DNA from: Thecamonas trahens ATCC 50062
Lineage: Eukaryota > Protista > Apusomonadida
Reading direction: 5' to 3'
Assembly: GCF_000142905.1 (NCBI RefSeq)
Contig: NW_013657602.1
Coordinates: 1 to 49,652, forward strand
Length of the DNA: 49,652 nt
Shown: positions 75 through 49,491 of the stretch, in pieces
How the letters are laid out: each line of letters begins with the position of its first letter
Position numbering within the stretch: the first letter of the stretch is position 1
Position numbers and translations under genes: made by a program
Notes under the pieces: generated by a model
The model's input: the letters and a program-made list of their open reading frames with translations, nothing else
Databases searched by the model: none
Told to the model about the DNA's origin: nothing

Positions 75-144
75 CCTAACCCTAACCCTAACCCTAACCC
101 TAACCCTAACCCTAACCCTAACCCTAACCCTAACCCTAACCCTA
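75..144. repeat. Telomeric repeat (CCCTAA)n = TTAGGG-type telomere, left chromosome end
   Basis: 10 perfect CCCTAA units (80-139) plus partial units, C-strand on + at the window start. Confidence 0.93.
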
Positions 145-181
145 GTTGATGCCTCGTCAACCCTAGCTGATGCCTCATCAA
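140..181. repeat. Subtelomeric 21-bp tandem duplication with internal hairpin
   Basis: CCCTAGTTGATGCCTCGTCAA (140-160) and CCCTAGCTGATGCCTCATCAA (161-181); each contains TGATG-CCT-CRTCA. Confidence 0.8.
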
Positions 182-16187: not shown

Positions 16188-16355
16188 CCACTTTCGCACA
16201 TGTACGCAAATCAAGTCACAACGCCTGCCAAACAACCTCCCCAACCACCACCACCACCCGTCCCCCCCCCCTTCCACACCCATCTCTACTCTTCCCACCC
16301 ACACCAAAAGCCCTCACACACCCACCTTTTACACACACACACATACACGCTCACC

Positions 16356-21944: not shown

Positions 21945-24900
21945 TTACGCCTGGGCAGCGGGGGGGATGCCACGGTTGGGCTTGTAGTCGGTGGTGCGCG
22001 GCTCCATGGTGATGCAGTCGACCACGGGGCAGATGCCGAGGCAGATGGCGCAGCCAGTGCACCGGTCCTCGAGGACGCGCGGGAGGTGGGTGTCGAGGTT
22101 AAAGGCGATGGCCTGGTAGCCCGAAGAGGAGCAGCCGTTGACGCAGCGGCCGCAGTTGATGCAGAGCTCCTCGTCGATGACGGCGACAACCTGCTGGGAG
22201 TTGTCGAGGTCACCGTAGGTGCCGACGTTGGGCAGGGCCTTGCCGAGCTCCTCGGCGATGGACGACGGGCCGCGGACGACGTCGGCCTCGTTGGGGACGA
22301 GGAACGGCGACGGCTCGGCGAGGTTGACCGACTTGGCCCACTCAGAGCGAATGCGCTGGCGCTCCTTCTCGTAGGGGCCAAAGCGCGGGAGGCCCTTGCC
22401 GTGCTCGCGCATGACGGCGTTGACGCGCGGGACGCGGTCGGTGATGGCCGGCGGCGCCTGGCCGTCCCATCCGGCAAAGTCGCCACGTGACGCCATGTAC
22501 AGCTGCGTCTTGAGGCCCATGATGTAGTCCTGCACAATGGTAAAGTCCTCGTTGTGGACGGCCGAGCAGATCTGGACGACCGACGCGCCACAGTGGATGT
22601 ACTGCATCGCCGTCTCTGCAGACTCGACACCGCCAGTGGCCATGATGGGGAAGCCCGGAAGCGCGTTGCCGATGGCCGACACGGCCTTGAGCCCGATGGG
22701 CCGCGTCGCCGAGCCAGACACGCCTCCGTACGTCGTCTTCTTTTCCTTGCCCACCGCAGGCCACGCCTCGGCGTTGGTCTTGAGGCCCATCAGGCCCGAG
22801 ACCGTGTTGATGGCTGTCACGCCCGTAGCTCCACCGCGCTTGGCGGCCTCGGCAATGACGCGGATGTCGGTCACGTTCGGCGTGAGCTTGGCAAAGAACG
22901 GCACGTCGCCGCACACCTCCTTGACCCACTGGCAAATGCCGAGCACGAGCTCGGGGTTCTGGCCGCAGGCGAGGCCCATGCCGCGCTCGCCCATCCCATG
23001 CGGGCAAGAGAGATTGAGCTCGAGAGCGTCTGCGCCCGACTCGAGCGCCTGCTGGGCAAGGGTCTTCCAGTCCGACTCGTCAAAGGCAGCCATGATCGAG
23101 GCGACAATGATGCGGTCAGGGTAGTCGGCCTTGACGTCCTTGACAAACTTGCACCAGTACGCCGCAGTCTTCTCCGAGATGAGCTCGATGTTGAGGAAGG
23201 CGCCCTGGCTGGGACCAAACAGGTGGCCCGACGTCGTGCCGCGGACAATGCGCGGCGAGACGTTGGTGACAAGGTCCTTGTCGAGGCCAAAGGTCTTGGT
23301 GACGGCAAAGCCCCAGCCAGCGTTAAAGGCGGCGCGGATCATATCGCCCGAGGTGGCCGGCGTGGCCGAGGCGAGGCCGAACGGGTTGACAAAGTGGAGG
23401 CCGGCCATGTCAACCGAGATGTCGACGGCATCGATCTCCGAGTAGTACAGCGGGAGCTGCGGCGTCGACGGGACCGGCAGGCCGTGCAGGCCCTGCAGGT
23501 AGGTGTGCATGGACCACGAGGCAACCTTGCCGTCGTTGACAGCCTCAACAGTCGTGCCCGAGCCGGCGCAGTCGCCACCGGTAAAGAGCCACTCGGCGCC
23601 AGTCGCCACCATCGTCTGCGGGTCGTGCTCGATGCCGCCCCACGAGTTAAACGTGGCCGGCGCGAGCGCAGCGCGGAGCGCCTCGTCCTTGAGCGACGAG
23701 CCAAAGGCGGTAATGATAAAGTCCGCCTTGACCCGCGACCACTGCTCCTCGTCGACGTAGTACTTGCCCTCGTCGTCCATGTCGGTCCGGAAGAGCTCGA
23801 TGGCCTTGACCTTGCCAGACGCCTCGTCGACAATAACCGCCTTGGGCGACGAGAACGGGAGGAACTCGCAGCGCTCGTCGCGCGCAAGGTCCACCTCCTC
23901 GGGCACCGCGCGCATGTCGTTCATGCCCTTGCGGAAGACAACCGTGACACGCCGCGCGCCGCACCGGAAGGCCGACGTCGCGCAGTCAAACGCCGTGTCG
24001 CCGGCGCCAAGCACCACCACGTGCCCGTGGAGCTTGGGCAGGTCCGGCCGCGCCTCGCCGACGCACGCCGTCGCCTTGGACGCCGTCATCACCAGCGGGA
24101 GGAACTGCTTCGACGTGTACACGCCCTGCTCGGGCGTGAAATCCGCAAAGGCAGGCGCAACCTTGGCGTCCGGCGCGCCCACGCCGAGGAACACAGCCTC
24201 GGCCCCGGTCTCGGCCTTGATCTGTGCCAGCGTCCGCTCGGCAGAAACCGGCGAGTTGAACTCAAACACCACGCCAAGGTCCTTCGCCTGCTGCACCTCC
24301 CACTCGACAACCTCAAATGGCAGACGGTACGACGGGATCTCCGTCGTCGACAGGCCGCCCACAAACGCGTTCTTCTCGTACACCGTCAGGTTCGAGTACC
24401 CCAGCCGCGCCAGGAACGTCGCCGCCGAAATCGACGCAGGGCCCGCGCCGATAAACGCCACAGGCGTCGAGAACGACTCGGGGAGCTCGTCGAGCGAAGG
24501 CGCCGCCGGGTTGCGGATCTGCTTCACGCCCATCTTCATGAACACCTGCGTGGCAAACTGCTGGAGGCCACCAATGTTGATCGCTCCCTCCTCGGCAGCG
24601 TGCAGGTTGCACCCGCCCACACACAGCTCAGACGTCGGGCACACCATGCCGCACGTCAGACCCAGCGGGTTGTCCGACAGAATGTACCGCGCCGCGCCGT
24701 AGTAGTTGCGGTTCGCAATGCACGAGATGAACGCTTTGACGTCGAGCTGCGTCGGGCACGACTTTTGGCACGGCGCGTCCGCGCACTTGAGGCACCGCCG
24801 TGCCTCAAACAGCGCACCACGCTCCGTCAGCGTTGTCGGCTTGATGTCCTCAAAGTCATGCGCGAGCGCCGTTCCAGGCGTGTGGATGTTGCGCTTAAAG

Positions 24901-25775
24901 TGCTCCTGCTGCTTGTGCACCTGCGTCGTCGGCACGCACTTGGCGTACTCGTCGACCGTCGACGAGAAGGCGAGGATGGCCTGTGTACGGGGAGGGGTAA
25001 GGTGAGTGTGGGAGGGGAAAAAAAAAAGGTCGTGTTAAAGGTGGGGAGGGAGGGGGGATAGTTGATGAGCTAGGGAGGGATGGAGGGAGGGGGTTAGAAG
25101 GGAAAGGAGGAGGAGGAGGAGGCTGTGGTGGAGGTGGAAGTGGAGGTGGTGGAGGTGGTGGTGTGGAGGGAGAGGGGAGGGGGGGGGGGGGGGGGGAGGG
25201 GGGGGGGACAGGCGAGGGGGGGACAGGCGAGGGCGAACCCCAAGCCAACAGACATAGCAAGGGTGTTCACATCGATCCTCCCCCACCCCCCCTTCCTCCA
25301 AAGGGAGAAAAAAAAAGCGAGGCCATTGATTAAATAACGTTGGGATTATCGTTGCGAGAGCGATGAACGATGGAAAAACGAAAACAAAGGCTTGGCCGTC
25401 TCAACCTCCCCACGTGGCGGACAGACGACCAAAGACAGAGGCGAGTTTGGACGAATAAAGGGGAGGAGGAGACCACAGACAGGCGCTGAGGTCGGAGTGT
25501 GCCTGAGCAAGGACCGAGGCTTCGGGCGAGGACAAAGGCCACTGCCGCCGCGCTTATGTCCGCTCGCACTGTTCCAAGCTGGTCGAGAGTCGGCCAGAGA
25601 GCATGGCAAAGGCAAAAAATGTTCGCGCCACACCGGCAGGCGCAACCACCCTGCTGTCGCCCGCCACGCCGCAGGCAGGCAAAGACGCTAGCTACAACAA
25701 CACGTTGCAAGGGCTTGTGGTGCGTACCTCGATGTCGACGATTTCATTCGTGGTCGGAGAGGACGAAGACGACAT
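21945..25775 (-). CDS. DPYD: Dihydropyrimidine dehydrogenase (NADP+), single-chain eukaryotic type, 1027 aa
   Basis: Exon 1 [16 protein letters not shown], intron 25727-24981; [62 protein letters not shown] (catalytic Cys), C-terminal CxxCxxCxxxC ferredoxin motifs. Confidence 0.97.
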
Positions 25776-33355: not shown

Positions 33356-33392
33356 GCGCCGACGGCTGGCGCCGAGGCTTGCAGCGCGGCCA

Positions 33393-34444
33393 TCACAGCC
33401 GCGAATGGAGCTTGGACGGCGCCGCCCGGACGACGGTGCCCTCGATGTAACCCGCAGGGTCGTCGACCGGAAAGTACACCTCATTGTTGTTCTCGAGGCC
33501 GAACCGCTGGATGTCGTAGAGGAAGACATGGATGTTGGGCATGATAAACGTGATCGTCTCCAGCTCAGGCACCCGCTCCATGACCTCCTCGCCGATGTCG
33601 TACACCATCTGCTGGACAGAGAGCGAATAGCGGTTGGCGAAAAGTCGAGCGTGACGTTGCGAATCATTGAGAGCGCCGCGCCGTAGCCCGGCTCCGAGCC
33701 ACGTGCAAACGTCCAGTTGGCCGTCACCGACGTGCACAGGAGCCGGTCGTGCATCTCCGGCAGCGTCGTGTACTCGCACCGCGGGAAGCCCTCAAAGCCC
33801 GATCCCGTCGTCTTGAGCACACGCAGGCCCTTAAAGCCCGACACAACGTCCGCGCCGCCGTCCGCCCGCGTCGTCGCCGATGCCGTGCGATAGCACGGCC
33901 CGGCCTCGGCAAACGCCGTCTTGTGCGCACCCTCCTGCCCATCAGGCGCATCAAGCCGCTCCCACAGAGGCTGGCGGATGTCGACCTTGCACTGGGTAAC
34001 TGTGATGGGGAAGAGAGAGAGTGTGTGTGAGAGAGAGCAAGATCCGGCCCTTGTGAGTGTATGGGAGGCAGGGCACCCGCAGCAGCGCCACCATCATCCC
34101 CATCCCCATCCCCATCCCCATCCCCATCCCCATCCCCATCCCCATCATCATCCCCATGACGTACCCTGAGCGTATTTCGACTTGAAATGCTGGGCAACAG
34201 ACTCTGCAAACGACTCGATGGGAGTGACAGGATGGATCTTGGCCAGAGCATACACGGTGTTCTTCATGGTATCCGTAGGCACCGTCGTCGAGTTATCTCC
34301 CGAGAGATACGTCCTCGCAAAGTCGGCGCCCCACAAATACACGTCGACGGAGAGCTCCGTCACCACGTGTCGAGGTCCACTGCGGTCGACGTGGACGACA
34401 CGAATGCGTGACTTGCCATAGTGATGCTCTCCAAGCGCTGCCAT
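33393..34444 (-). CDS. UOX: Urate oxidase (uricase), about 295 aa, C-terminal PTS1 (SRL)
   Basis: YGK, GDNS..VPTDTMKNTV, LRVLKTTGSGFEGF..EYTTLPE..DRLL, SVQ, MPNIH; intron 34164-34000; one T-run frameshift about 33640. Confidence 0.96.
34096..34145. repeat. (CCCCAT)n microsatellite in the uricase intron
   Basis: Direct reading. Confidence 0.85.
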
Positions 34445-34600
34445 GTTGGGCTTTCCGTCCTGTTTCTCGTTCTCGAACAGAGTAAAGTAAGTAGCTCAGT
34501 CCCGTCTCTTGTCCCTTCCCTCCGCCCCCCCCCCCTTCGCTGCCCCACTCCAACTCATATCATCGGTCGCCTGACTCACTCGCCCGACTCAAACCGACTC

Positions 34601-34633
34601 TTTGGCGCATTTTTTGGCGCATTTTTGGCGCAT
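34601..34633. promoter_or_regulatory. Three tandem TTTGGCGCAT motifs (E2F-consensus-like) about 160-190 bp upstream of the uricase ATG
   Basis: Copies at 34601, 34613 and 34624; match the E2F consensus TTTSSCGC. Confidence 0.5.
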
Positions 34634-34896
34634 ACCCCCCCCCCCCCACCACCACCACCACCCTTCCCTCTCTCCGAGCCTACCCGTACACCTCCTGCTG
34701 CATCCGATTACGCCGTGTTTGTTTTTGATGACCAGATCGTTCCGCATCGTCGTGGGGGAAAAAACAGACCACACCCTGCCCAGCGCCCCCTCTCCTCCCC
34801 TCCCCGTCTGACCCGATCTGACCCAGTTGCCAAGTCGTAACGCTGTCTACCATGTGATGGATCCTCGCCCACTCGTCATCGCTCCTTCGACATCGT

Positions 34897-35630
34897 TCAC
34901 TCGTCATCGTCCGAGGCAAAGTCGGCGAGCGAGGTGTTGCGGAACATGGCGTCCTTCGGCTGGTACACAGTAGCCGAGCTGCGCGGACGCTCGATGCCGA
35001 GCCTCCTCCGCCAGATCTCGGGGCGATCCGGATATGTCTTTTGGAGAAAGGCAACGTAGGCGTTGTGAAGCATGTTGGCCTCGTACAGCGAGATGTAGCG
35101 CGTGACCGATGCTCTGGGCGGCGCCTTCTTTCCCCTCCGAAGCACGTCCCAGTCCGAGTCCGGCAGCACCACGCCGACGATCTCCTCCACCGACTGGGAA
35201 AGGCGATGACCGACGCATCGCCTGTCCCTCCACCGCCGGCCTCTGCCGCCGCCAGCTTGGCCTTCTCAGACTCGAGCAGCTCACGATACTCCTTGGGCGA
35301 GAGGCCATGCATACCCTCTGATCCCAGATCCAAGCCCTTCAGCGCCTCTGCCAGCTCGTCCACCACACGTTCATCCACTTCCTTCCCCGCGCTAACTGCA
35401 CCTTGCCCCTCCCCATCCACTTTTGTCCGTCCATGCCCTCGAGTCTCACCTGCCACCGCCATCCCTCCACCGCCGCCGCCCTCCAGCCGCAAGGTAACCT
35501 CTGAGAGCTTGGCACGGAGCTTCTCACCCCCGTCAGGAAGCTGCGCCATGAGCTCCTCGTCTCTAAGCATGACACGGAGTTGCCGCGCGAGCTTCTCGTC
35601 AGGAAGAAGCTGCTGTTGTTCCGACGTCAT
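34897..35630 (-). CDS. Gdown1/POLR2M(GRINL1A)-like protein, about 244 aa
   Basis: N-terminal LRDEELMAQLPDGGEKLR resembles the Gdown1/TTF2 LPDKG motif; C-terminal YISLYEANML..RLGI, acidic end; frameshift about 35197. Confidence 0.55.
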
Positions 35631-35752
35631 CACAACTCGCTCGCTCGCTCCCTCTGGCCTCGCCCGAACGAAGCACTCGCGTCAAGTGTGGCTGGCTACA
35701 GCTACAGCCGGAGCCCGAGTCGCACTGCGCCACAACTGCTGCATTTTACCTT

Positions 35753-38700
35753 TTACTCCAACTCGGGTGCCACAGGTCCGCATGCCATGCGAATGCGCTC
35801 GGACGAGGCCGGCGAGTGGAGGTCAAAGGCGCCAGATCCGAGGCCGGCGTCGACGCGGGCGGCGCCGACGGCATCCTTGATGGCGAAGAACACACTGGCG
35901 GCGAGGAAGAGCGGCGGCTCGCCGACACCCTTGGACGAGTGAATGGCCCGCGAGTTGGGCGCGTCCTTGAGGAGCGACACGTTGAAGATCGAGGGAATGT
36001 CCGAGAACGCGGGGATCTTGTAGAACGACGGGCCGCGGGTAAAGACGTGCCCGTTGCCGAGCTTGATGAGCTCCTCGGTGGTGAAGAGGCCCATGCCCTG
36101 CACAAACGCGCCCTCGACCTGCCCGAGGTCAATCGCCGGATTGAGCGAGTCGCCCACGTCCATGACGAGGTCGGCGCGCGTCACCACGTGGTCGCCGGTG
36201 AGGACGTCGATCTCGACCTCGGCCACCGCCGCGCCGTAGCAAAAGTAGTTGAACGGCATGCCGCTTCCGGCCGTCTCGCCCGTCGGGTCAAACTCGAACC
36301 CGATGTCCGGCGTCTTGTAAAAGCCGTTGGCCGAGAGGTTGATCCGCTGCAGGTGCGCCGCGAGCGCCTTTTCCGCCAGCGGCGCGTCCGCCGCCACGCC
36401 CTCCACCGTCGCCAGCCGAGCCAAAATCTGCTCGCACGCATCGAGCACCGCCATACCGTTGATGTCCGACGAGACCGACGCCGCCGTCGGCACTGTGTTC
36501 GCCACCTTGTCCGTCGCTGTCTCGTCGACGTACACGTCGCTCACCGGAATACCAAACGCAGACGCCGCCACCTGCGCCATCTTGGTGTGCAGGCCCTGGC
36601 CCATTTCGATGCCGCCGTGTGAGACAAGGACCGTCCCGTCCTGGTAAACGTGGACAAGCGCGCCGGCCTGGTTGAGGAACTTGGCCGTAAACGACATGCC
36701 GAACTTGGTCGGCACCGCCGCCAGCCCGCGCTTCCTCCACCGGTGCGCCGCGTTGAACGCAGCCACCTCGGCCCGCCGCGTCTCGTACTCGGACTTGCTC
36801 ATCACTTCGCCCCACACCGCCTCCAGCCGGTTGTCGGTAAGCACCTGCCCGTAGTGCGTCGTCGCGTCCGGCTCGTAAAAGTTGGCCGCCCGCACCTCGG
36901 CCGGATCCTTGCCCAGCTCGCGCGCCACATTGTCGATCCACGACTCGCAGATGAGCATCGACTGCGGGCCGCCAAACCCGCGGAACGCCGTGTTCGACGG
37001 CGTGTTGGTCTTGCACAACCACCCGCGCGCACCCACCGCGGGAATCTTGTAAGCGTTGTCGACGTGGAACAGCGCCCGATCCATGACCGAGCCCGAGAGG
37101 TCGAGCGAGAAGCCGGCGTTTGAGTACAGGTCGATGTCCAGCCCGAGGATCTTGCCGTCGTCGTTGTACCCGACCTTGTACACACCCTTGTACGGGTGCC
37201 GCGTCCCAGAGTACACCATGTCCTCGTCGCGGTCGAGCATGCACCGCACAGGCTTGCCCGAAAGCTTGGCCGCAAGCGCCACCGCCGCAGACAGCGGGCA
37301 CGTCCGCGTCTCCTTTCCGCCAAACCCACCGCCGATCCGCTTGACGTGGACCGCCACCTTGGCAGACGGCACGCCAAGGACCCGCGACACAAACTTCTGC
37401 GTCTTGGACGGGTTCTGCGTCGACGCGTACACCTTCATCTGCTCACCCTCGACAGGCACCGCCAGCGTGGCAAACGTCTCCAGGTAAAAGTGCTCCTGTC
37501 CGCCGACGTACGTTGTGCCCTCGAGCACATGCGATGCGCCCTCCAGCGCGCCCTCAACGTCACCGCTCTTCATCTTGTTGCCGCCCGACATGTACTGCCC
37601 GGCCGCCACCGCCTCATCGATGGTCACCACAAGCTCAGGCGCGTCAGGTGCCGCCTCGGTGAGCACCACGTTGACCTTGCGCGCCGCCAGCCGCGCCAAA
37701 TCCGCACTCGACGCCACGACCATACCCAGCAGCTGGCCCTGCGACGTGATCTCCTTCGACACAATGACCTCCTCGTCGTACACAATGGCTCCGAGAACAT
37801 TCATCCCAGGCACGTCATCAGCCGTGTAGACTGCAACCGAAGGGTCCAGCGCCAGCGCGGCGCTCGTCTCGATCCGCTCGATTGTTCCCCGTGCCACCGA
37901 CGAGAGCAGCGGCGCGCCAAAGAGCGAGCCGGCTGCCACCGGAATGTCGTCGACGTACACGGCCTCGCCGGTCGCCTGCAGCAGCGCCGACGCATGCATC
38001 TCTGGCATGTGCACCCCGCCCGAGACCGGCGGCGAGAGCACTCCGTCGTACGCAGCCTCAAACGCCGACGAAGCATACTCCTGACGGCCCTGCGAGAGCG
38101 GCTTGTGCTCCTGCAGCAGCGCCCCGGTGATCTCGCGCGCCTCCACCGGCGCAAGGCCCGACTCGACCGAGACGTAGAGGAAGAACTTGTAGAGGAACGA
38201 CTTGGCCAGCTCGCGACGGTATCCGACCTGCCCACCCGGCGCGTTGGGCGCCAGCGGCACGTCCACCGAGTCGAGCTGCGCCATGGCCTTGCGGACGAGC
38301 GCGTCGCTCCACTTTTCGCCAGACATCAGCACCTCGGCAGCCGCCACTGCAGACTTGGTCCACGCCGCCATGCCGCCGTACGCCAGGCCGGCGTCGACCA
38401 CGGCGCCCGTCTCCGGATCGAGCTTGACCCGGAACGACGCGCCAACAATCGCAATGTCGTCCTCACGCCGCCGCGACTGCTTGTACGACCGCACATACTC
38501 GTTCTCGCCCGCCAGCGGGACCACAAGCTTGACCATGACCTCGTCGGCCTCCACCGCCGTCTTGCGGTAGCCCACATACAGTTCGTTGAACGGAATCCGC
38601 CGCTCGCCACGCGCCGCAGACGTGACCACCACCTCGGCGCCGAGCGCCATCCACAGCGGGTTGAGGTCAGAAATCGGCGACGCCGTCATGACGTTGCCAG

Positions 38701-39959
38701 CCAGCGACGCCACGTTGCGGATCTGGTTGCCAGCAAACCAGCGGAGTGCCTGCTCGATGCCAGCGTACACTGGGTTGGCCGTTGCCTCGTCCGCCAGCTG
38801 CGTGCTCGCAAACCGCGCCAGCTCGTTGAGATTGAGCGAGGCTCCGAGGTGCAGCGAGGAGCTCGCCTCGTCAACCTCGCACTGCAGCAGCTCGGCCACG
38901 CCGCCGGTCGCCACAAGCACCTCAAACTCGGCGTGCTTGAGCTTGGCCTCAATGCCGAGCTCGGTGTTGCCGATCACAAGCTTTGCGCCCGGAAACTCAG
39001 CCTTGAGCGTCGCAACCTGTGCCAGCGTCGTCGGCACATACCACGTCGTCTTGGACGTCGGTTCGGTCGCCGGCCGGAACGTCACCACTGGCGCAGCACC
39101 GTCGGCCGCTGCCCCGCCGCCGCCATCGCCACGAGTTCCTCTGGCACCTCCACATGCTCTGCAAGGCTCGACGCCGACGATGATGCTGCACCTTGCGCGC
39201 TCTTGATAAGCTCGCGGAAGCCCTGCAGGATCGGGCGGTAGCCAGTGCACCGGCAGAGGTTGCCGTCAAACGCGCGCTCGACGTCTTCCTCGCTCGGGTT
39301 GGGGTTTGACGCCAGCAGCGCGTACATCGACATGACAATGCCGGGCGTACAAAAGCCACACTGCGAGCCATTCGACTCGGCCATCGCCTTTTGCACCGCG
39401 TGGGGACTGCGCGTGTTGCCGATGCCCTCCACCGTCGTAACCACCAGCCCGTGCACCGCCGCCAACGGCGTCAGACACGCGTTAGCCGAGTAGCTCGTCG
39501 CCTTGCCGACACTGTCCACCCGCGTCAGCGTCACCGTGCATGCACCGCACCCGCCCTCGCCACATCCAAGCTTGGTTCCGGTCAGACCTGGACTCGTTCA
39601 CCATCATCGCGGCAGATTCAGATAATCCATCATCAAGCCGCGTACAGGAGCATCAAAAGTCATCAACGGTAGGCAGCCCGCGTCGCCAACAACGATAAAT
39701 TAACGTTCCCGCAACGGTTTCAACGATTATTTTTCAGATGGTTTTTGGGAATTCCACGTGTGAGTTGCGTTGAGCTTCTGGGGCCGGGAGCGGGGAGACA
39801 TAGGCATGGTGGTAGGGAGGTAGGGAGTAGGGAAAGACGGGAAAACGTACCACGAGAGCGGAGAAAGGTGAGCAGTGTCTGAGTGGGGTCAAAACTCCCA
39901 GGAGTAAGCTCAATCCGGTTGTTGTTGACATAACAGATAAGCGGCGTGGTCGTGGTCAT
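35753..39959 (-). CDS. XDH: Xanthine dehydrogenase (Mo/FAD/2x2Fe-2S), about 1314 aa
   Basis: Intron 39850-39588; [98 protein letters not shown]; substrate Glu/Arg of XDH present; one frameshift about 39113. Confidence 0.97.
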
Positions 39960-40795
39960 GGTCGGCGCCAGAGAAGTCTGCAGTTGCTACTCAAGTACGA
40001 CCGACTCGAATTGAGGTCAAAGCCACGGAAAACGGCGGCTCACAGCCACACCGCGGACGAGGCCCACCACATTGCAATTCATCAGTCTGTTGTCGTTATT
40101 TGATGTTGGATGTAGGAGTGGGCGATCTAGACCGACTCGTGGCTCGTGTCGATGCCGTGCAATGTTGAGCTTTAATCCTTATCGGGGCGGTCGCTCGGAC
40201 GCGTCGTCGCGCATCTCAACGTGAACAACTCGATGATGCCTGGCTTCCAGGTCACCTGGCCGACGCTGCTTGACGCCTGCTTGGTCTGCGGCTTGAGGTG
40301 GGAGGCGCGCCCGCACGTGATGGCGGCCGACACGTAGACGCCCGCCTGAAGGATGCCCGAGTTGCCGTCGCGGTGGCGGATGCCTGGGAGCATAGGCGAG
40401 GCGCGCGAGGTGCCGTACGGCACCGATCCGGAGGAGCGGCGAGCGCGCGGACGGTGCGGAGCTTATCGTTGACGACCTTGACGACCGGGAAGGAGAGCAT
40501 GCCAGAGTTGAACAAAGCGGCCGAACGGGATAGCGCGAGGACATTGTGGATCTTCTTGCAACGGACGAGCTTGCCGGTCGGCGTAGCCGCGCAAGTGGCG
40601 GCGCGCCATCTTGCACTGGATTCTGGACGCCGCGTATGCGCTCTACGCTGACGCGAGCCCACGCCCCGCCATCGCCGTATGTTTTCTGTTGTGGCCCACC
40701 AGTGGCCACAGCACTCTTCTACCGCGACTGACGGCCGCTGTGACGTCTGTGGAGCGTCGCGGCACGCGGCTTGCGCGATGGTCAAATGTGTACCG

Positions 40796-42305
40796 TTAAG
40801 GATTAAACGCGACTCTGTCGCCACTGGTATCGTCGGTCTCGCCGGCCTGGGCGTCGTAGCTGGATGCGCTTTGGTCTGAGAGGTTCGAGCCATCAGAGTC
40901 GGTGCCAAGGTCTGCGCTCTCGTCGTCTTCGGCCCGTTGTCGGCATCAGCACCTACGGTGGCAACCTTGGCAGCATGGAATCGAACCGCGAGAGTGATAA
41001 AAACGATCGAGAGGAGCGAGGCGGCGGCGGCGATAAATGCGCCGACATGGTACGAGCCGGTGGCGTCGCGGAGTAGGCCGGTGACGGGCGAGCCGGAGGC
41101 GATGCCCACAAACGAAAAGCCGATAGTAAAGCCGGTGATGGTCGGGATGGACTGGATAGGATATAGCTCGGCCACAAAGGCCGGCGCCAAGCCGATGTAC
41201 GAGCCGGCGTTGTATGCGTATGCAAAGCCGAGGAGGAGGAACGGCCAGAAGCCCGAGACAAAGGGCCAGACCGCGAGACATACAGCCATGCCGGCGGCGG
41301 CGACCCGGAGCATAAGCGGGACGCCGAGGCAGTCGGCGGTAAAGCCGTTGACCAGCCGCCCGGCGATCGAGGCCACGCCCATGGCCGCCAGAATCAGCGC
41401 CGCCCGCGACTTGGAGACTCCGCTCTCCTGGGCAGACGGCACAATGTGGATAAAGAGGACCAGAATCGAGTACGAGAGCGTGGCCGAGACCGCGAGCAGT
41501 GAGACAAAGACCCGGTCGCCGAGGAGCGCCACAAACGAGAGTCCAATGCGGGCCTTGGCCGGCGGCACCCGCCGGGCGAGCAGCATTGCTGCCGCCACCA
41601 GCACCACCATCGAGAGCGCCATCACCCGCAGCGCCACCCGCCACCCGTACGCCGACTCGAGCTCCGAGAGCAGCGGCGCAAAGGCCAGATTGCCCACCCC
41701 CGAGCCACACACCGCGAGGCCGAGTCCGGTCCCACGTCGGGCCTGGAACCAGGTCGAGACCGAGACGATGGCCGGAAAGTAGGCCATGCCGAGGGCGGTG
41801 CCGAAGACCACCCCGTACGTAGCCAGCAGCATCCAGATCGAGGTTGCCACCGAGCTCACCAGCAACGCAGCGACGCCGATCAAGCCGGCCACCACCGAAG
41901 GAATGCGGAAGCCAAAGGCATCGATGACTCTCCCAGCTACAATACCAAAGAGAGTGAGGAAGGCGTTGGCGGTCGAGCCTACAAGCGCCACCGAGGCCTT
42001 GGACGCGCCAGCAAACGAGGCCTCGATGGGGACAAACAGAACACCAAACGAGTAGATGAAGCCCAGGACCACCACATGGATGACAAATGATGCAAATACC
42101 ACAACCCATGCATATCCCTTGTCCGGTGCCCGTTCTCTAGGCCCTTCCATCTCGCCATCGCCACAACCACTGCCACGGCCACCGACTTCCTCGTCGACAG
42201 GCACCGAGACACCCGCCGCCTTCTCGCCCCCTCCCGCCCATTTCCATCGCTCTTGGTGACGTCCGCCCCGCCTAGCGGATCCTCCACGGGGAGGAGTCGT
42301 CCCAT
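40796..42305 (-). CDS. MFS transporter, monocarboxylate porter (SLC16/MCT) family, about 503 aa
   Basis: PDKGYAWVVV..SF (MCT signature), GRVIDAFG, WFQARRGTGLGLAVCGSGVG, YGWR, GRLVNGFTAD, GLLRDATGSY; frameshifts about 42230 and 40933 restore N-terminus and acidic tail. Confidence 0.9.
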
Positions 42306-42648
42306 GCCGAGTGCAACAATGGCGATGGGTGTGGAGGTGCACGAGTGTCCACGGGGTGGCCAGCTGGCGTCTCGGGGTGGATGCCACCGTGCCCGATGGG
42401 ATGCTGGCGATGGCCATGGGTTTCTGGCGATGGCGATGGCGATGGGATGCTGGCGATGGCGATGAGATGCTGGCGATGGCGATGGGTGGCTGGCGATGGC
42501 TGACTGGCGTGCTTGGCTTTTGATGCGCCCCTTGATGGCAATTGCTAGCGATAGGTGCCGAGGACAGCCCGAGTGGGACCAGCAGCAGCACCTCACTCGC
42601 ACCGAGCACCCCCACCCACCCACCCACACGTGCGCGCGGGGAGGGCCG

Positions 42649-44124
42649 ATGGCTGAGCGAGAAGGGAATACTCAAGTGCTCGAGCCATTGCTTCGGACAG
42701 ATGGACATGTGGCGTACGGGGGCGACAAGAGCAAGCGGCACAAGACTATCCATACTCCGTCTTGGTACCCATCGGTCAGGGTCTCGACGCGGTGGACAGA
42801 GGTCCGCAGATCACTGGCAGCTGGAGAGGAGCCGGCTGGATGGCGGGCCGAGAGCAAACGGGAGAAGATGTACTTGTTGCTGAATGGTCACTCGAAGACA
42901 GGGCGGATGGTCCAGGGTGCGATCTTGGCTTTGATTGTGGCTAATCTGGCTCTGTTTGTGGCATCGACCGACCCGAGCTGGTCGGCCTCGAGCGAGACGG
43001 CCTTTGCATGGATCGAAGGCTGCTCGGTCATCATCTTTACCTTTGAATACGTGGCGCGGGTGTGGTCGATTGTCGAGGCAAACAAGTACGCACACCCGCT
43101 ATGGGGCAGGATCAAGTTTATGACCAAGGCCGTGTCTCTCATCGACGCTGTCGCCATTCTCCCGTGGTTCATCGGGCTCTTTGTGGAGGCTCTGACGCCG
43201 CACGATGTGCCGATCACCACTCCGATCCGCATCTTTCGCGTCCTTCGCCTGCTCAAGACCGAGCAGTACGGGCAGGCGTTTGCCTCGGTCAAGCGGGTTG
43301 TCTGGCACAACCGCGAGATTCTCTCGGTCGGCCTCCTCCTCTCGGGCATTCTCCTCTTTGCCACCGCCACTCTTCTGTGGGCGGCGGAGCACAAAGACAA
43401 CCCGGGCGACTTTGGGTCGATCCCCAAGACCCTCTTTCTTGCTGTCCTCATGCTCACCGGGCAGGGCATCGACTACTCTGGCAAAAACTACTCGACGCTG
43501 ACGCTCATCATCATCGCTGTTACGGCTGTGGTCTCTGTCGCCTTCTTTGCCATTCCGGCCGCCATGCTCGCTTGGGCCTTCGAGTCCGAGGCCGAGCGTC
43601 TTGTCGCTGTCCGCCGGGAGCGGGCCAAGGCCAAGCGGCGCGCAGTCGAGCTGGGCATGACCTATGTCGAGCCGATCACCGACTCGGACTCGTTCTCCTC
43701 CGACTCGTCCGGCATGCTCTCATCGTCCGAAGACGGCTCGCCCGAAATCTTTGCCCTCTTTGACGATCCGACCTCGCCGGGCCTCGACGCCGCGCACCTT
43801 GGCCTTGTCCTCCGCACCTTTGGCTATGACTTTGACGCCGAGACGCTCGAGGACATGCTCGGGGACGTTGATCCCTTCCGCACCGGCATCATCACCTACC
43901 CGCGGCTCCTCACGCTGTTGGCGCGGCGTCGGCTCCGGCGCATCCAGGACCTCGGCCCAGCCGCCGGCGACGAGCCATGGCGGACGGGTGGCCGATTCTC
44001 GCCCGAAGACGGCTCCCGCTCGTCTCTCCAGCCGCTCACCGACGTCTCGCACGCCATTGCTGTCCTGAAAGCGCTCTCGCCCGCTGATCGGCTGCAAGCT
44101 CTTGCAGCTGTTGCTGCTCCGTAG
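42649..44124 (+). CDS. 6-TM voltage-gated ion channel (Kv-like) with C-terminal EF-hand pair, 491 aa
   Basis: S2 IFTFEYVARVW, S3 IDAVAILPWF, S4 IRIFRVLRLLK, FGSIPK pore helix, filter LTGQG, S6 FAIPAAML; calmodulin-like lobe EIFALFD..DVDPFRTGIITY. Confidence 0.85.
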   Translation: MAEREGNTQVLEPLLRTDGHVAYGGDKSKRHKTIHTPSWYPSVRVSTRWTEVRRSLAAGEEPAGWRAESKREKMYLLLNGHSKTGRMVQGAILALIVANLALFVASTDPSWSASSETAFAWIEGCSVIIFTFEYVARVWSIVEANKYAHPLWGRIKFMTKAVSLIDAVAILPWFIGLFVEALTPHDVPITTPIRIFRVLRLLKTEQYGQAFASVKRVVWHNREILSVGLLLSGILLFATATLLWAAEHKDNPGDFGSIPKTLFLAVLMLTGQGIDYSGKNYSTLTLIIIAVTAVVSVAFFAIPAAMLAWAFESEAERLVAVRRERAKAKRRAVELGMTYVEPITDSDSFSSDSSGMLSSSEDGSPEIFALFDDPTSPGLDAAHLGLVLRTFGYDFDAETLEDMLGDVDPFRTGIITYPRLLTLLARRRLRRIQDLGPAAGDEPWRTGGRFSPEDGSRSSLQPLTDVSHAIAVLKALSPADRLQALAAVAAP

Positions 44125-44241
44125 GCTCGGGAGGTAAAATTGCTACCGCAGCGCGCCCCATCAATTGCCACCGTGGTGTTTGGCCATGTCACACCTGCTG
44201 CGCTACCTGGCCCCCCTTGCTGCCACTCCACTCTGGTCATC

Positions 44242-46683
44242 ATGGAGGCGAGCAGCCGGCTGGAGGAGCGGGTGCGGGAGTTAGAGGCACGGGTGCGACG
44301 AAAGCAAGCGACTATTGACTCGCTGAGGGGTATGGTGAGGGGCATGAGCACTGGTGGAGGTGGTGGCGGCGAGGGTGAGGCTGGTGCTGGCGAGGCGGGT
44401 GGTGCTGACCTGGCCGACGAGCTGGAAAAGTCACGATCGGAGGCTGGCTTTCTGAAAGAGGAGCTCGTGAGAGCCAAGAACAAAGTGACCGAGCTGCGGG
44501 CTCTGTTGGGGCCAATGGGGATGAGTGCGCTGATGGATGAGGCTGCAGAGGCAGAGCGATCAGCGAGCAAGTCGAGCAAGGCGCTGGCAGACCTGGAGGC
44601 GCGCGCCGAGGAGCAGAAGGAGACCATCGTGGCCTTGCGGGGTGAAGTGGAGACGCTCGGTGCCCAACTGGCTCTGGCGCATGCGGATGATGCTCAGGTC
44701 GCTGCTGCTGGGAAGAGAGCTGCACTGGCTGCGTCGGACCTGTCTGATGCTCGCGCAGACAACGCGACGCTGCGGGCAGCGCTTGACGCGGCCGAGGCCG
44801 AGCTGGCCCAGCTCCGGGCCGAGGCTGCTGCCGGCCGCACGGCTGCGGCCGAGGCATTTGAGCTGGCTGCTCGCTTGGAGGAGGCCAAGGTGAGCGCGAC
44901 GACGCTGCGTGGCGAGCTGGCCAGTGCGAGCTCAGCGGCTGCCGAGCTGACCCAGCTCCGCGCCGAGCTCAAGGCGATGCGCAAGCAGCGTGATGCACTG
45001 GCGCGTGCGCTGGCCGACGAGGAGGCGCGGACTGAGGCGCTCAAGGGCATGGTCAAGGCGCAAGAAGCCGACGCGCTCGCCGACTACGCCGCTCGAAAGT
45101 CGCGCGGTGCGCTCGAGGACCAAGTTGCGGCGCTGACCGCACAGCTCGAGCGGGCTCGTGATGAAAAAGAAGCGATGCGCGCAGCGGCGGCGCGGCTGGC
45201 CGAAGCTCGCGAAGATGCAGCAGCCGCCGAGCGGAGCTCGGCGCTCGAGGCTCTCATTGCCACGTCTGCCGGCAGAAGTAGCAACCAAAAGTCTGCTGCA
45301 CAGCGCGAGGCCGATGTGAGGCTGGCCGATCTCCGCGCTGCGCTACAGGCGGCGGCAGCCGAAAACGCAGCGGTCAAGGACGAGCTCACCGCCGCACGCC
45401 ACGCCGCTGCGGTCGAGACGGCCAAGGTCAACGACCGCGACGCCACCATTACTTCGCTCCGCGACGCCCTGGCTTCTGCGCGGGCGAGCGCCGACTCGGC
45501 AGCCGAGACAGCACGCGCCGCTGACGGCCGGGCGCGGCAGGCCGAGTCTGCGCTCCGAGCGCGGAACGCGGCGCTTGATGCAGCCGAGGCTGCCCGCCGC
45601 ACCGCAGTCGAGGCAGCAGCTGCTGCCACGACACAGGCGAGCGACGCGCTGAGCGCCGCGGGCCAACTGAAAGACGAGCTCAAGGCAGCCGAGTTGCGAA
45701 TGCGGCGGGCAGCGAGTGTGGCCGACCGCGCCGAAGACGCTGCGGCGGCTGCGCGCGACGAGAACGCGCGACTGGAGGCCGCCAACAAGGACCTGGCGCG
45801 GCAAATCGAGGCGCAAACGGCGGCAGCGGAGGCGGCAGTCGAGACGGCTCGGCGGGCAGGGGAGCGGAGTGCTTTGCTGGCAGGGGAGCTGGACGCTGTC
45901 CGCGGCAAGCTGGCGGCGACCAAGGAGTCCAACGCTGAGCTCCAGGCACTCGCGCGTGAACGATCAGCAGCAGTGTCGGCGCTGGAGCGCCAGATGGATA
46001 CGGCGTCGGGCTGGCGGAGCTCGGCGGCATCGAGTGCAGAGGCTGCAGCGTCGAAGCGCGACGAGGCGGCGTCGCTGCGTGCGATTGTGGCGAGGCTGCA
46101 AGATGAGAACGACGGGTTGCGAAGCGCAGCGGCGGCGGCCGGCGACCGTGAGGCAGCGGCTGTGAACGCCAAGGCGAGGCTGGAGGCCAAGGTTGCGGGC
46201 CTGCGATCGGAGCTGGCGACTGTCCGGGCGCAGCACCGCGAGGAGCGGGCTATTGTGTCGACGTCGGCAAGCACGGCGGCGGCGGCGTCGTCACGGGCGG
46301 CGGCCGCCGCTGCAACGGTCTCGGACAAAGACGAGACCATTGCGCGGCTGCGAAGCATGGTGCTCAAGCTGCAGGCGCGGCTGGCGGGTGCTGGTGCTGA
46401 CGAGCAGGAAGCCAAGATAGCGAGCCTAGAGGAGCAGGTCGAGCACGCCAAAGCGACGTCAGCACAGCTGCGGCGGGTGCTTGCTACGTACCAGGCCGAG
46501 GCGCGCGACGTGTCGCGGGCGGCCGATGCGAGCTACGGCGGCGTGCCGCGGGCGGCGGACGACGCGGCGGCGGTGGCGAGCAAGCTGCGGAAGGAAAACC
46601 GGCGGCTGAAAGAGATGCTGACGTCGGTGCGAAGTGACAACGATGCGCTGCGGGCGATGGTGGCTCGGGCGCGCGGGCGGTGA
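44242..46683 (+). CDS. Ala-rich long coiled-coil protein, 813 aa, function unknown
   Basis: Uninterrupted ORF with near-continuous heptad pattern. Confidence 0.8.
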   Translation: MEASSRLEERVRELEARVRRKQATIDSLRGMVRGMSTGGGGGGEGEAGAGEAGGADLADELEKSRSEAGFLKEELVRAKNKVTELRALLGPMGMSALMDEAAEAERSASKSSKALADLEARAEEQKETIVALRGEVETLGAQLALAHADDAQVAAAGKRAALAASDLSDARADNATLRAALDAAEAELAQLRAEAAAGRTAAAEAFELAARLEEAKVSATTLRGELASASSAAAELTQLRAELKAMRKQRDALARALADEEARTEALKGMVKAQEADALADYAARKSRGALEDQVAALTAQLERARDEKEAMRAAAARLAEAREDAAAAERSSALEALIATSAGRSSNQKSAAQREADVRLADLRAALQAAAAENAAVKDELTAARHAAAVETAKVNDRDATITSLRDALASARASADSAAETARAADGRARQAESALRARNAALDAAEAARRTAVEAAAAATTQASDALSAAGQLKDELKAAELRMRRAASVADRAEDAAAAARDENARLEAANKDLARQIEAQTAAAEAAVETARRAGERSALLAGELDAVRGKLAATKESNAELQALARERSAAVSALERQMDTASGWRSSAASSAEAAASKRDEAASLRAIVARLQDENDGLRSAAAAAGDREAAAVNAKARLEAKVAGLRSELATVRAQHREERAIVSTSASTAAAASSRAAAAAATVSDKDETIARLRSMVLKLQARLAGAGADEQEAKIASLEEQVEHAKATSAQLRRVLATYQAEARDVSRAADASYGGVPRAADDAAAVASKLRKENRRLKEMLTSVRSDNDALRAMVARARGR

Positions 46684-46702
46684 GTTTGGATTTAGGAACG
46701 AG

Positions 46703-48214
46703 TCACAGCTCGGGCTTGTTGTCCGAGTCGGCGAGGGCACGGGCGAGGGCGGTAAAATCAAAGAGGAATGGTGCGAGGAAGCGGGCGAGCCACATGGCGA
46801 CGATGGCGACAGCGACAAGGGCGATGGCGGACTTGACCCAGCCGCGGGAGGAGGTGACCGAGCCAGCGCGGTCTCGATCGGCGGCGCAGAGCTGCGCGTG
46901 TGCGGAGGCCTCGGCGGCCTTGCATGCGTCGGAGCAGTAGACGGCGGCGCAGGTCCGGCACGCGTTGTCGACCGTGAGGCTGACGGCGGCCGGCAGCGTG
47001 TCGCAGGTCGGCATGCAGCAGGGCGAGAACGGAATGGCGCGAGGGAGACGCGTCGAGATGTGAGCGTAGACGCGGATGGTTTGGACAGTGGCTGGGTCGG
47101 GCGAGAGCTGGCCCGGGTTCCACATGCGGAGCAGGCGCATGGCGGCGCGGTAGCGGGTGAGGTCGGCGATGCCGGCCCGGATGTCGTCAGGCGCGTTGGC
47201 GATGGCGTCGTCTGATGTCTCGTGCTTGAGCAGCCGAGTAGTTGCCAGCTGGAGCGAGGCGAGCGCGGTGTACCAGTGGCAGTCGGGCGCGGTGGCGAGA
47301 AAGGCCTCGATGGCGGCGGCGGCGTCGTCCATGGCAGCGTCGGCGTCGGCTGGACAGTCAGCCTCGCGGAGCTCTGTCGCCCGCGAAGTGTGGATGTGAC
47401 CGAGGAAGAGATGGGCTTCGCCGCGCAGCTCGCTGCCGGGCACATCTTCGGGAAGAGCGAGAGCGTCGGTGAAACAGTTCTCGGCAACGTCGACGATCTC
47501 GGCGTGTGCGGGGCCAGCAAAGGCAACCGACCACATGACGAGGATGCCAGCGAGGAGCGGAACGCGAAGATCGCCCCCAGCAGCAACAATGGTGGCGTGC
47601 TGGACAAGTTGCATCGATTTCGCAACAAGCCGGAGGATGCTGCGCATGCGATCGCTCCGGGCCTCGCGGCCGGCGTCGTCGCCCTCGCCGGGCGGCGGAG
47701 CAGCGTTGAGCGCAGAAGCCTGTCGAAGCGCAGCAAAGTGAAATGCAAAAGCAGCGACCATGCAGCTGGCAATCGAGTCGTCGTCTGCGCCCTCTTCCAA
47801 CGCAAGCACGCCCTGCAACTTGCGGTAGCGATCAGGCGAATCGAGGATGTCTCCCCAATCAAGAGCGACCACAGCGATGAGCATGGCCTCGTACAGCATC
47901 TCGCACACTGCGCGACCTTGTGCGCGATGCTTGCTCCTCTCCGCCTCGTCCATGCTCTCGCCACCAGGGCGAGCATCACCAGTATGGTAATCGGCATCTG
48001 TGCCATGATCGGCATCGGCATCGGCATCGGTATCATTGACGCTGACCTCTTGGTTCTGCGCCAGGCTACCGGAGTCGTCGACGGGGAGAAGCGGAAAGTG
48101 GTCAAGGGCAACAAGACCAGCCGACCACTTGGTAAAGGCGGAGAGCACTCGCTTGCCTGTCGGCGTTGTGCCGATTGCCCCAATGGCGCTGAATTGGTAT
48201 GGGAGGCTGGTCAT
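46703..48214 (-). CDS. Helical (TPR-like) protein with MYND-type zinc finger and C-terminal TM segment, 503 aa
   Basis: C..PTC...CRTC..VYCSDACK.....H..LC followed by hydrophobic SAIALVAVAIVAMWLA; start inferred downstream of (CAT)n repeats. Confidence 0.7.
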   Translation of the reverse strand: MTSLPYQFSAIGAIGTTPTGKRVLSAFTKWSAGLVALDHFPLLPVDDSGSLAQNQEVSVNDTDADADADHGTDADYHTGDARPGGESMDEAERSKHRAQGRAVCEMLYEAMLIAVVALDWGDILDSPDRYRKLQGVLALEEGADDDSIASCMVAAFAFHFAALRQASALNAAPPPGEGDDAGREARSDRMRSILRLVAKSMQLVQHATIVAAGGDLRVPLLAGILVMWSVAFAGPAHAEIVDVAENCFTDALALPEDVPGSELRGEAHLFLGHIHTSRATELREADCPADADAAMDDAAAAIEAFLATAPDCHWYTALASLQLATTRLLKHETSDDAIANAPDDIRAGIADLTRYRAAMRLLRMWNPGQLSPDPATVQTIRVYAHISTRLPRAIPFSPCCMPTCDTLPAAVSLTVDNACRTCAAVYCSDACKAAEASAHAQLCAADRDRAGSVTSSRGWVKSAIALVAVAIVAMWLARFLAPFLFDFTALARALADSDNKPEL

Positions 48215-48586
48215 GGCCGAGTCGAGTGCGACGGCGGACAGGGGACGGGCGACGGGCGACGGGCGACGGGCGACCGGGACCGGGACGAGAGCCGGTGAGA
48301 TGCGTGAATGGGAGCATTGTATAGCTGGATGATTAGATGAGTCAAGGGGGGCACGGGGGCGGGGGGGGGGGGGGAGGGGGGGGGGTATCGGATCAGACTC
48401 GTGTTTGCCATCATCATCATCATGGTCATCATCATGGTCATCATCATGGTCATGGTCATCCATCATGGTATTCGTCATCATCATCATCATCTCCATCATC
48501 ATCTTCATCATCATTCCCATCGCCATCATGTGGTCGGTTAGGATGATTGACGCTGTCTCAGTCTGCACCTCGGTCTCGGTCTGCAC

Positions 48587-48587
<1 letters not shown>

Positions 48588-48656
<69 letters not shown>

Positions 48657-48657
48657 T
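48588..48657. repeat. (GGTCTC)n microsatellite upstream of HIU hydrolase; (CAT)n-rich tract at about 48409-48530
   Basis: Direct reading. Confidence 0.85.
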
Positions 48658-48716
48658 CTCACTTGGCTCGGGTCCGAGTCAATCAAGAGTCACTCAACTC
48701 TACCACACTACATACT

Positions 48717-49491
48717 ATGGCCGACACCATTACGCTCTCGTCGCATGTACTCGACACGACCACTGGGTAGGCTAGTGCATGCATGCCTTCTCTATACCCA
48801 CCACTTGGGGCTACTTCCCATCCCCCCATCCGTCAACCCACTCATGTTGCTCTCTGTCTCTTCTGTTCTGCTGTCTGTTGTATCGGCTGTGGCCGGCGGC
48901 GATGTCGGCGGCGGCGATGTTGGCGGTGGTGTGATCGGGCTCTGGCCATTCCGACGAGCGAGAGCAGTCGCCCTGCTGCTGGGCTTGCTGTCGCGCTGGA
49001 GAAGTTTGATGGTTCGACGTACACCACCATCGCAGAGGCGGTTACCAACGATGATGGTCGGGTTGGGGATGTAGGTTGAGGCCGAGAGAGTGTGACGAGG
49101 GATTGAGATAGCAGCCAATGGAGCCGATCACGGCCGATCAAGTCGATCAAGCCGAGTACGGCTGATCGAGCCGGTTACGGCTGATTGAGGAGCTGAGAGT
49201 GTATGGAAGGGAGCAGAGATGCGTATGGATGGAGCGATGGCATTCGGTTAGCGCACTCACCCCTCATGCCTGATTTTGCCCGTGATACGGTGGAAAGTGG
49301 GCCTCGCGGAGCCGCTCACCAAGGCTGTGTACCGGATCACCTTTGCTACCGGCGAGTACTATGCCAAGGAAGACAAGCCATGCTTCTATCCGGTTGTTAC
49401 CATTCTCTTTGACGCCTCGGTCGAGTCTGGCCACTATCATGTCCCGTGCATCCTCTCCTCGCACGGCTACTCGACGTACCGCGGCTCGTAA
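48717..49491 (+). CDS. URAH: 5-hydroxyisourate hydrolase (transthyretin-like), about 117 aa, 3 exons
   Basis: SHVLDTTTGRPAAG, TNDDGR, YRITF..EYY, FYP, HYHVP.ILS..GYSTYRGS (YRGS signature); introns 48767-48967 and about 49071-49290. Confidence 0.96.

Follow-up and report, generated by a model that had tools for sequence, protein, structure and literature searches.

Loose subtelomeric linkage of upper purine-catabolism genes in the protist Thecamonas trahens, and a fused lower-pathway protein with a candidate allantoinase domain

Eukaryotes, to our knowledge, seldom cluster genes of primary metabolism, and nearly every known example comes from fungi. Here we describe a subtelomeric stretch of DNA from the apusomonad Thecamonas trahens ATCC 50062, the entire contig C78 (49,652 bp, hereafter called the window), on which genes for xanthine dehydrogenase (XDH), uricase and 5-hydroxyisourate (HIU) hydrolase (HIUase) lie close together. 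Apusomonads are a sister lineage of Opisthokonta; an upper-purine-pathway cluster in one of them would extend eukaryotic clusters to further taxa and further biochemistry, and its subtelomeric site, as with the DAL cluster of yeast, bears on how such clusters form.

The yeast DAL cluster comprises six adjacent genes that lead from allantoin to glyoxylate, and its co-regulation and relocation are proven (Wong and Wolfe 2005, via PMC13751858). The T. trahens locus resembles it in being subtelomeric and eukaryotic and in uniting non-homologous genes of one nitrogen-compound catabolic route, transporter included; in both systems a malate-synthase-family gene is assigned to the glyoxylate end. In contrast to DAL, T. 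trahens links the upper half of the route, from xanthine to 2-oxo-4-hydroxy-4-carboxy-5-ureidoimidazoline (OHCU), and does so loosely, with three genes among about nine, whereas one fused gene, located on a different contig, covers the DAL-equivalent steps.

Bacterial urate and purine operons (puc, hpx and the PuuD-HIUase-fusion-XdhABC arrangement of Bdellovibrionota) likewise link XDH, urate oxidase and HIUase, and the Bdellovibrionota clusters hold the same four-domain lower-pathway protein as T. trahens. These operons are tight, their XDH is split into subunits and their oxidase is mostly of PuuD type, whereas the T. trahens genes are monocistronic, intron-bearing, of eukaryotic type and interrupted by unrelated genes. 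A further relative is the allantoin synthase fusion Urah-Urad (HIUase-OHCU decarboxylase) of plants, diatoms and bacteria (PMC13751858). The T. trahens fusion shares with it the joining of consecutive ureide-pathway enzymes in one polypeptide and, as in other eukaryotes, peroxisomal targeting; it differs in that HIUase is separate and OHCU decarboxylase is fused to a beta-lactamase fold, an allantoicase and a malate-synthase-like domain. Literature searches returned no description of a cluster such as the one in T. trahens, in agreement with the original prediction made from the DNA, nor of the four-domain fusion or a beta-lactamase-type allantoinase; none of these appears in an October 2026 review devoted to genomic organisation, fusions and clustering in urate catabolism (PMC13751858).

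Three consecutive enzymes within 16.1 kb

The genes of the locus and its immediate associates are as follows.

33393..33999, minus strand: uricase exon 2, matching PF01014 and aligning with uricases in the PDB
34000..34164, minus strand: uricase intron, GTACGT...CAG, holding a (GGGGAT)n repeat
34165..34444, minus strand: uricase exon 1, ATG at 34444, PF01014 profile positions 2-93
34680..35633, minus strand: small open reading frame (ORF) between uricase and XDH, its frame disturbed by assembly indels at 34700 and 35195; no Pfam match
35753..39587, minus strand: XDH exon 2, with 2Fe-2S, flavin adenine dinucleotide (FAD) and molybdenum cofactor (Moco) domains
39588..39850, minus strand: predicted XDH intron, GTACGT...CAG, at a frame change; joining restores the canonical 2Fe-2S sequence
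39851..39959, minus strand: XDH exon 1, start ATG at 39959
40252..42753, minus strand: SLC16-like carrier of the major facilitator superfamily (MFS; PF07690), in the same orientation as XDH and 0.3-0.8 kb upstream
48717..48766, plus strand: predicted HIU hydrolase exon 1, MADTITLSSHVLDTTTG
48968..49074, plus strand: predicted HIU hydrolase exon 2, RPAAGL...NDDGRVGDV, with an alternative donor at 49070
49298..49491, plus strand: predicted HIU hydrolase exon 3, ending HYHVPCILSSHGYSTYRGS and a stop, with an alternative acceptor at 49252

Uricase (33393-34444), XDH (35753-39959) and HIU hydrolase (48717-49491) thus occupy the positions originally proposed for them, within 16.1 kb, and their predicted setting was also seen: uricase and XDH are co-oriented with one small gene between them, and an SLC16-type carrier lies upstream of XDH. 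The minus strand carries the transporter, XDH, the small ORF and uricase, with HIU hydrolase 9 kb further on and on the plus strand. The claim that the three enzymes perform consecutive steps holds, and all three are intact and eukaryote-type. Database searches were run on separate exons and ORFs.

The uricase gene encodes a cofactor-less urate oxidase (Uox) with an intact reading frame. PF01014 matches minus-strand pieces within 33393-34444 and both tandem T-fold domains are covered, exon 2 encoding the second half of domain 1 and the entire domain 2. The protein ends SKLHSRL, in which -SRL is a type 1 peroxisomal targeting signal (PTS1), and is predicted to be peroxisomal. Protein record XP_013752711.1, ‘uricase [Thecamonas trahens ATCC 50062]’, is 100% identical to the uricase piece, and the gene is single-copy in the 28.68-Mb genome. 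A frame break at 33641 would suggest a pseudogene; we rejected this, the break being a one-base homopolymer deletion of this assembly. An extra A after 33639 (T run 33640-33643) is present in three independent data sets, namely a 2010 T. trahens run, an estuary metagenome and a marine metatranscriptome.

Within the XDH gene a 1165-aa ORF (35753-39250) carries FAD_binding_5, CO_deh_flav_C, a hammerhead domain and MoCoBD_1/2 by Pfam, and the 2Fe-2S part was located at 39202-39585 by tblastn with a 70% identical homologue. Two 2Fe-2S, FAD and two-part Moco domains are hence found in one chain, as in single-chain xanthine oxidoreductases. We regard the product as a true XDH and not an aldehyde oxidase (AOX), because it scores 200 bits higher against XDH structures in the PDB (1012 bits vs 811 for AOX) and keeps the equivalents of Glu802 and Arg880 (bovine numbering; GGFGGKETR and AFRGFGGPQ) that separate the two enzymes. 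With the XDH of animals, algae and amoebozoans it shares about 50% identity, and its C-terminus, APELE, is without a PTS1. Two more genes of the XDH/aldehyde-oxidase family lie in tandem about 10 kb apart on another contig (C66:104049-104750 and 114231-114929); their MoCoBD_1 scores are lower, at about 220 bits vs 314 for XDH, and they are probably aldehyde oxidases.

The HIU hydrolase gene, the only transthyretin-family gene in the genome, was recognised by its plus-strand match to PF00576 (49306-49485; profile positions 51-109, 65 bits). Its exon model displays SSHVLD, DDGR and a terminal HYHVP...YRGS, of which SSHVLD, DDGR and HYHVP are what we take to be the His/Arg/His active-site set of the transthyretin-fold family. 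As for the carrier, residues 198-596 of its ORF give MCT10 (E 6.5e-25) and then MCT8 (SLC16) as best PDB matches. An NCS2 permease (xanthine/uracil; PF00860) was absent from the genome; this and the other genomic absences given below come from six-frame hidden Markov model (HMM) searches of a draft assembly (28.68 Mb in 131 contigs).

Spliceosomal introns had been described at the outset for all three genes. That of uricase is confirmed by RNA, a marine metatranscriptome contig joining 33997 to 34165, so this intron is spliced in nature; those of XDH and HIU hydrolase are predicted. For XDH one predicted intron is retained of two. The second, at 39091-39202, was rejected in favour of a single missing C: the gap at about 39111 is a homopolymer deletion, since an extra C after 39111, absent from this assembly, is found in three independent data sets.

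Contigs from four public runs were placed on 33300-39299 to check the assembly, and revealed five 1-base homopolymer deletions in 6 kb (about 1 per 1.2 kb), after 33639, 34700, 35195, 35463 and 39111. Because independent data sets carry the deleted bases, the uricase and XDH genes are intact and their frame breaks are assembly errors. The same deletions explain why the public XDH gene model is only 978 aa, and public gene models for the T. trahens genome are damaged by such errors.

Linkage, chance and origin

For three given loci to fall within 16.1 kb of 28.68 Mb the probability is 9e-7, and for any three of 6-12 pathway loci to lie that close it is 2e-5 to 2e-4. Before correction, the linkage is significant against chance by either figure, and the locus has one hallmark of a DAL-type cluster, at least three non-homologous pathway genes nearer to each other than chance would place them. 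Our preferred reading, to which we give a probability of roughly 0.55, is that the purine genes form a real but loose physical cluster whose non-random linkage is kept for function. The non-random linkage is an observation, from which we infer selection and co-regulation; selection for co-inheritance, or for shared chromatin or regulation as proposed for the yeast DAL cluster, would probably maintain it.

Evidence from other eukaryotes is mixed. Outside T. trahens we sampled four eukaryotic XDH loci. In a contig (28,766 bp) of MAST-4, an unrelated marine stramenopile, HIUase and XDH share a strand and HIUase is 2.7 kb upstream, an independent instance of XDH-HIUase linkage. A pathway neighbour at XDH is absent from the other three of the four loci (a dictyostelid, a chytrid and one further eukaryote), which counts against a functional cluster, as do several further observations. 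A generous correction for about 200 pathways leaves P at about 0.004-0.04, and in the worst case at about 0.01-0.04. The pathway genes are three among about nine in the 16.1-kb span and are not contiguous; a Kv-like channel, a coiled-coil protein and a MYND protein, unrelated to the pathway by Pfam, lie between XDH and HIUase. In the seven upstream regions that were screened, no 7-mer is common to pathway genes beyond chance (best raw P 0.002 over 1898 tests). CCGACTC was rejected as a regulon motif, its 22 occurrences vs 11.8 expected (about 2-fold) being scattered in coding DNA, with none ahead of the fusion gene. The whole-genome search called for in the original prediction did find guanine deaminase (on contig C12) and candidate Moco sulfurases (MOSC_N matches on C21, C53 and C12); these and the lower pathway are all at other loci.

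Such observations would be expected if the linkage were accidental or neutral, three pathway genes having come to lie within nine genes without selection or shared control and having been noticed through the scanning of many windows. The missing upstream motif, the interspersed unrelated genes, the dispersal of the remaining pathway loci and the lack of linkage in most sampled eukaryotes all fit this explanation, and with 554 windows of this genome scanned and about 11,900 observations recorded some coincidence is expected. An accident has nevertheless to accommodate a probability of 9e-7 for the given trio, or of no more than 2e-4 when any three of 12 loci are allowed, the fact that the three steps are consecutive, the independent XDH-HIUase linkage in MAST-4, and the presence within 27.5 kb of a further nucleobase-catabolic gene, for dihydropyrimidine dehydrogenase (DPYD). 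We hold accident to be a serious but rather unlikely explanation, and continue with the functional cluster as the preferred one.

The closest homologues of the T. trahens proteins (70% identity for XDH, 69% for uricase, 47% for the fusion) are on metagenome contigs of 1-7 kb without informative neighbours. Uricase neighbours in metagenomes were also tried as a source of comparison and set aside, both contigs examined being bacterial operons.

A bacterial origin of the linkage, in which a transferred purine operon gained introns and targeting signals later and left the present cluster as its remnant, draws on the fusion-gene architecture, which is common to about 310 bacterial species and found there in urate operons beside HIUase and XDH genes, and on the uricase, for which some top matches from beyond the lineage sit in bacterial operons. 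The linked genes themselves speak against it. The XDH is of the single-chain eukaryotic type, about as close to animal, algal and amoebozoan enzymes as given above, and its list of matches already suggests a place inside eukaryotic clades; in the bacterial operons XDH is split into XdhABC, and urate is oxidised mostly by a membrane enzyme of PuuD type, not by the cofactor-less uricase. The intron of uricase, at least, is genuine, the fusion gene belongs to another contig, and the tree of the fusion family, which cannot be rooted, fits transfer in either direction. We consider this origin highly improbable.

Equally improbable is an assembly artefact that misjoined HIUase or some other part to a small contig: the assembly is error-prone (the five 1-base indels above), the contig is short with a poly-C end just past HIUase, and the continuity check with independent contigs extends over 33.3-39.3 kb, short of HIUase, which again weighs against the cluster, but 33.3-39.3 kb is tiled colinearly by these contigs (2010 and 2020 T. 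trahens runs and the estuary metagenome) with no conflicting joint from T. trahens' own runs in that interval, and composition is uniform throughout the window (GC about 63%).

A four-domain lower-pathway protein and a candidate third allantoinase

The lower half of the pathway was found in a single gene elsewhere in the genome.

Contig C73:62398-67431, plus strand: lower-pathway fusion gene, a 1677-aa intronless ORF ending -SKL

Its domains are, in order, malate-synthase-like, OHCU decarboxylase, beta-lactamase fold (PF00144) and allantoicase twice. The OHCU decarboxylase and allantoicase profiles both match this one ORF; the proposed whole-genome search for these two enzymes thus succeeded, away from the cluster. 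The fusion also holds the only malate-synthase-family sequence of the genome. Its neighbours, a cyclase-like ORF and a WD40 ORF, were inspected as possible purine genes and offer nothing purine-linked.

The search for known allantoinase types, likewise proposed at the outset, was negative for both AllB and PuuE in the genome. For AllB (TIGR03178) the best match is a dihydropyrimidinase (TIGR02033 548 bits; AllB 195 bits, cut-off 358), and PuuE (TIGR03212) has no match. Nor does the genome hold an AllA-type (cupin) ureidoglycolate lyase. With AllB, PuuE and AllA absent, the two missing reactions, those of allantoinase and ureidoglycolate lyase, coincide with the two non-canonical domains of the fusion.

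The four domains recur in this architecture in 106 protein clusters and, by species, in about 310 of GTDB, mostly Bdellovibrionota/Oligoflexia, including the cultured Oligoflexus tunisiensis, with some metagenome-assembled genomes of Planctomycetota and Myxococcota; the family is also present, with PTS1 signals, in several marine protists. In bacteria the fusion gene lies inside urate operons. At the 37 loci with long flanks HIUase was always within 10 kb (37/37) and usually directly upstream, PuuD-type urate oxidase was nearby in 32 and XdhABC in 17. The AllB or PuuE cut-off was reached in none of 40 fusion-bearing bacterial genomes, and AllA was found in none of them either.

In a tree of the family, six sequences of eukaryotic context are set apart from 97 bacterial sequences by a split with 100% support. 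The six comprise T. trahens, two Tara relatives ending -SKL, one ending -SRL and two others, and two of them are on contigs with plainly eukaryotic genes. The tree is unrooted, and is compatible with transfer of the fusion gene in either direction.

The beta-lactamase-fold domain (residues about 880-1295; PF00144, E 1.4e-11) carries the catalytic ASMSK. This Ser-x-x-Lys motif, a Y-S-G (Tyr-x-x) motif and H-Q..N.G are invariant across 24-40 family members. An AlphaFold 2 model of good confidence (predicted local distance difference test score, pLDDT, 88) comes closest to family VIII esterases, LACTB, D-amino-acid amidases and class C lactamases, all of them distant, with template modelling (TM) scores of 0.5-0.56 and 15-19% identity. 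The domain sits between OHCU decarboxylase and allantoicase, which is the order of the reactions, and recurs in two smaller fusions, one with allantoicase and one with both OHCU decarboxylase and allantoicase. It also has stand-alone homologues of about 400 aa, many of them ending SKL, SRL, AKM or ARM. Genomic context was tried for these and abandoned, their contigs being merely 1.2-1.5 kb long, and the ESM Atlas returned only generic ‘beta-lactamase domain’ clusters. Because neither of the two known allantoinase types was found in T. trahens or in any of the 40 bacteria (40/40 negative), we propose this domain as a candidate third allantoinase.

Malate-synthase-like proteins have been identified experimentally as ureidoglycolate lyases (UGL) in vertebrates and other eukaryotes (PMC10120013). 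The first domain of the fusion is not a malate synthase A (MSA) by score (TIGR01344 96 bits vs a cut-off of 594). It resembles UGL in its divergent fold, in its association with allantoicase and uricase, in the replacement of Arg276 (E. coli MSA numbering) alongside intact Mg/glyoxylate ligands, and in the absence of cupin-type AllA. The replacement is by Trp and is invariant in the family, while Arg166, Glu250, Asp278 and Asp447 are retained. Unlike UGL the domain is part of a fusion, retains Trp365 and occurs in bacteria too, whereas PMC10120013 found UGL only in eukaryotes. These sequence features suggest that the malate-synthase-like domain is a ureidoglycolate lyase.

In the scheme that we propose, cytosolic XDH, without a PTS1, would produce urate, which uricase (PTS1 -SRL) would oxidise in the peroxisome. 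HIU hydrolase would open the resulting 5-hydroxyisourate to OHCU, and OHCU would pass to the 1677-aa peroxisomal (-SKL) protein encoded on C73. Its OHCU decarboxylase, its beta-lactamase-fold serine hydrolase as putative allantoinase, its allantoicase and its malate-synthase-like domain as putative ureidoglycolate lyase would then act in turn, with two urea and glyoxylate as end products. That the beta-lactamase fold is a third, non-homologous allantoinase which, with the UGL-like domain, takes OHCU to glyoxylate and two urea on one polypeptide, making purine breakdown a two-locus affair, is a proposal to which we attach about even odds. In the protist and in 40/40 bacteria the only unassigned domain of this conserved enzyme matches the only missing reaction, allantoin to allantoate. 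If correct, the assignment would define a new allantoinase class and extend malate-synthase-like ureidoglycolate lyases to bacteria.

The original prediction saw the cluster as serving nitrogen salvage, which now appears doubtful. Neither urease alpha nor the urea-carboxylase-specific region was detected in the genome, the latter search giving only generic biotin-carboxylase matches, and so the four ring nitrogens would leave as urea. Most likely the route disposes of prey purines and recovers glyoxylate carbon in this bacterivore.

As a side observation, a bacterial uricase/OHCU-HIUase cluster on a metagenome contig is adjoined by a DUF6986 protein (443 aa) that matches HpcH_HpaI faintly and is possibly a further aldolase-fold player in ureide breakdown.

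Setting of the locus

Two other features place the purine genes within the window.

78..145, at the contig start: telomere repeat (CCCTAA)n, read directly from the sequence
21945..24935, minus strand: DPYD, a 996-aa ORF with Fer4_20, Pyr_redox_2, DHO_dh and Fer4_21

The purine genes lie 33-49 kb from the telomere repeat, which bears out the near-telomeric position first proposed. Outside the repeat, at the extreme contig end, is a (TACC)n run at 1-77; it may have arisen in assembly or library preparation, or may represent a terminal repeat of unusual type. At the other end 161 bases separate HIUase from the end of the contig, which terminates in a poly-C tract. The search of the next 50 kb suggested earlier could not be carried beyond this point, and the whole-genome search was run.

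The DPYD gene, for step 1 of pyrimidine breakdown, is intact and 8.5 kb from uricase, and may form with the purine genes a wider nucleobase-catabolism neighbourhood. Dihydropyrimidinase, the enzyme after DPYD, is encoded elsewhere (contig C48:234207-235517).

A talin-like gene at 16200-19306 on the plus strand has FERM, IRS-type PTB and IBS2/VBS domains by Pfam. Together with paxillin-type and other adhesome genes of the window, it is consistent with an apusomonad integrin adhesome.

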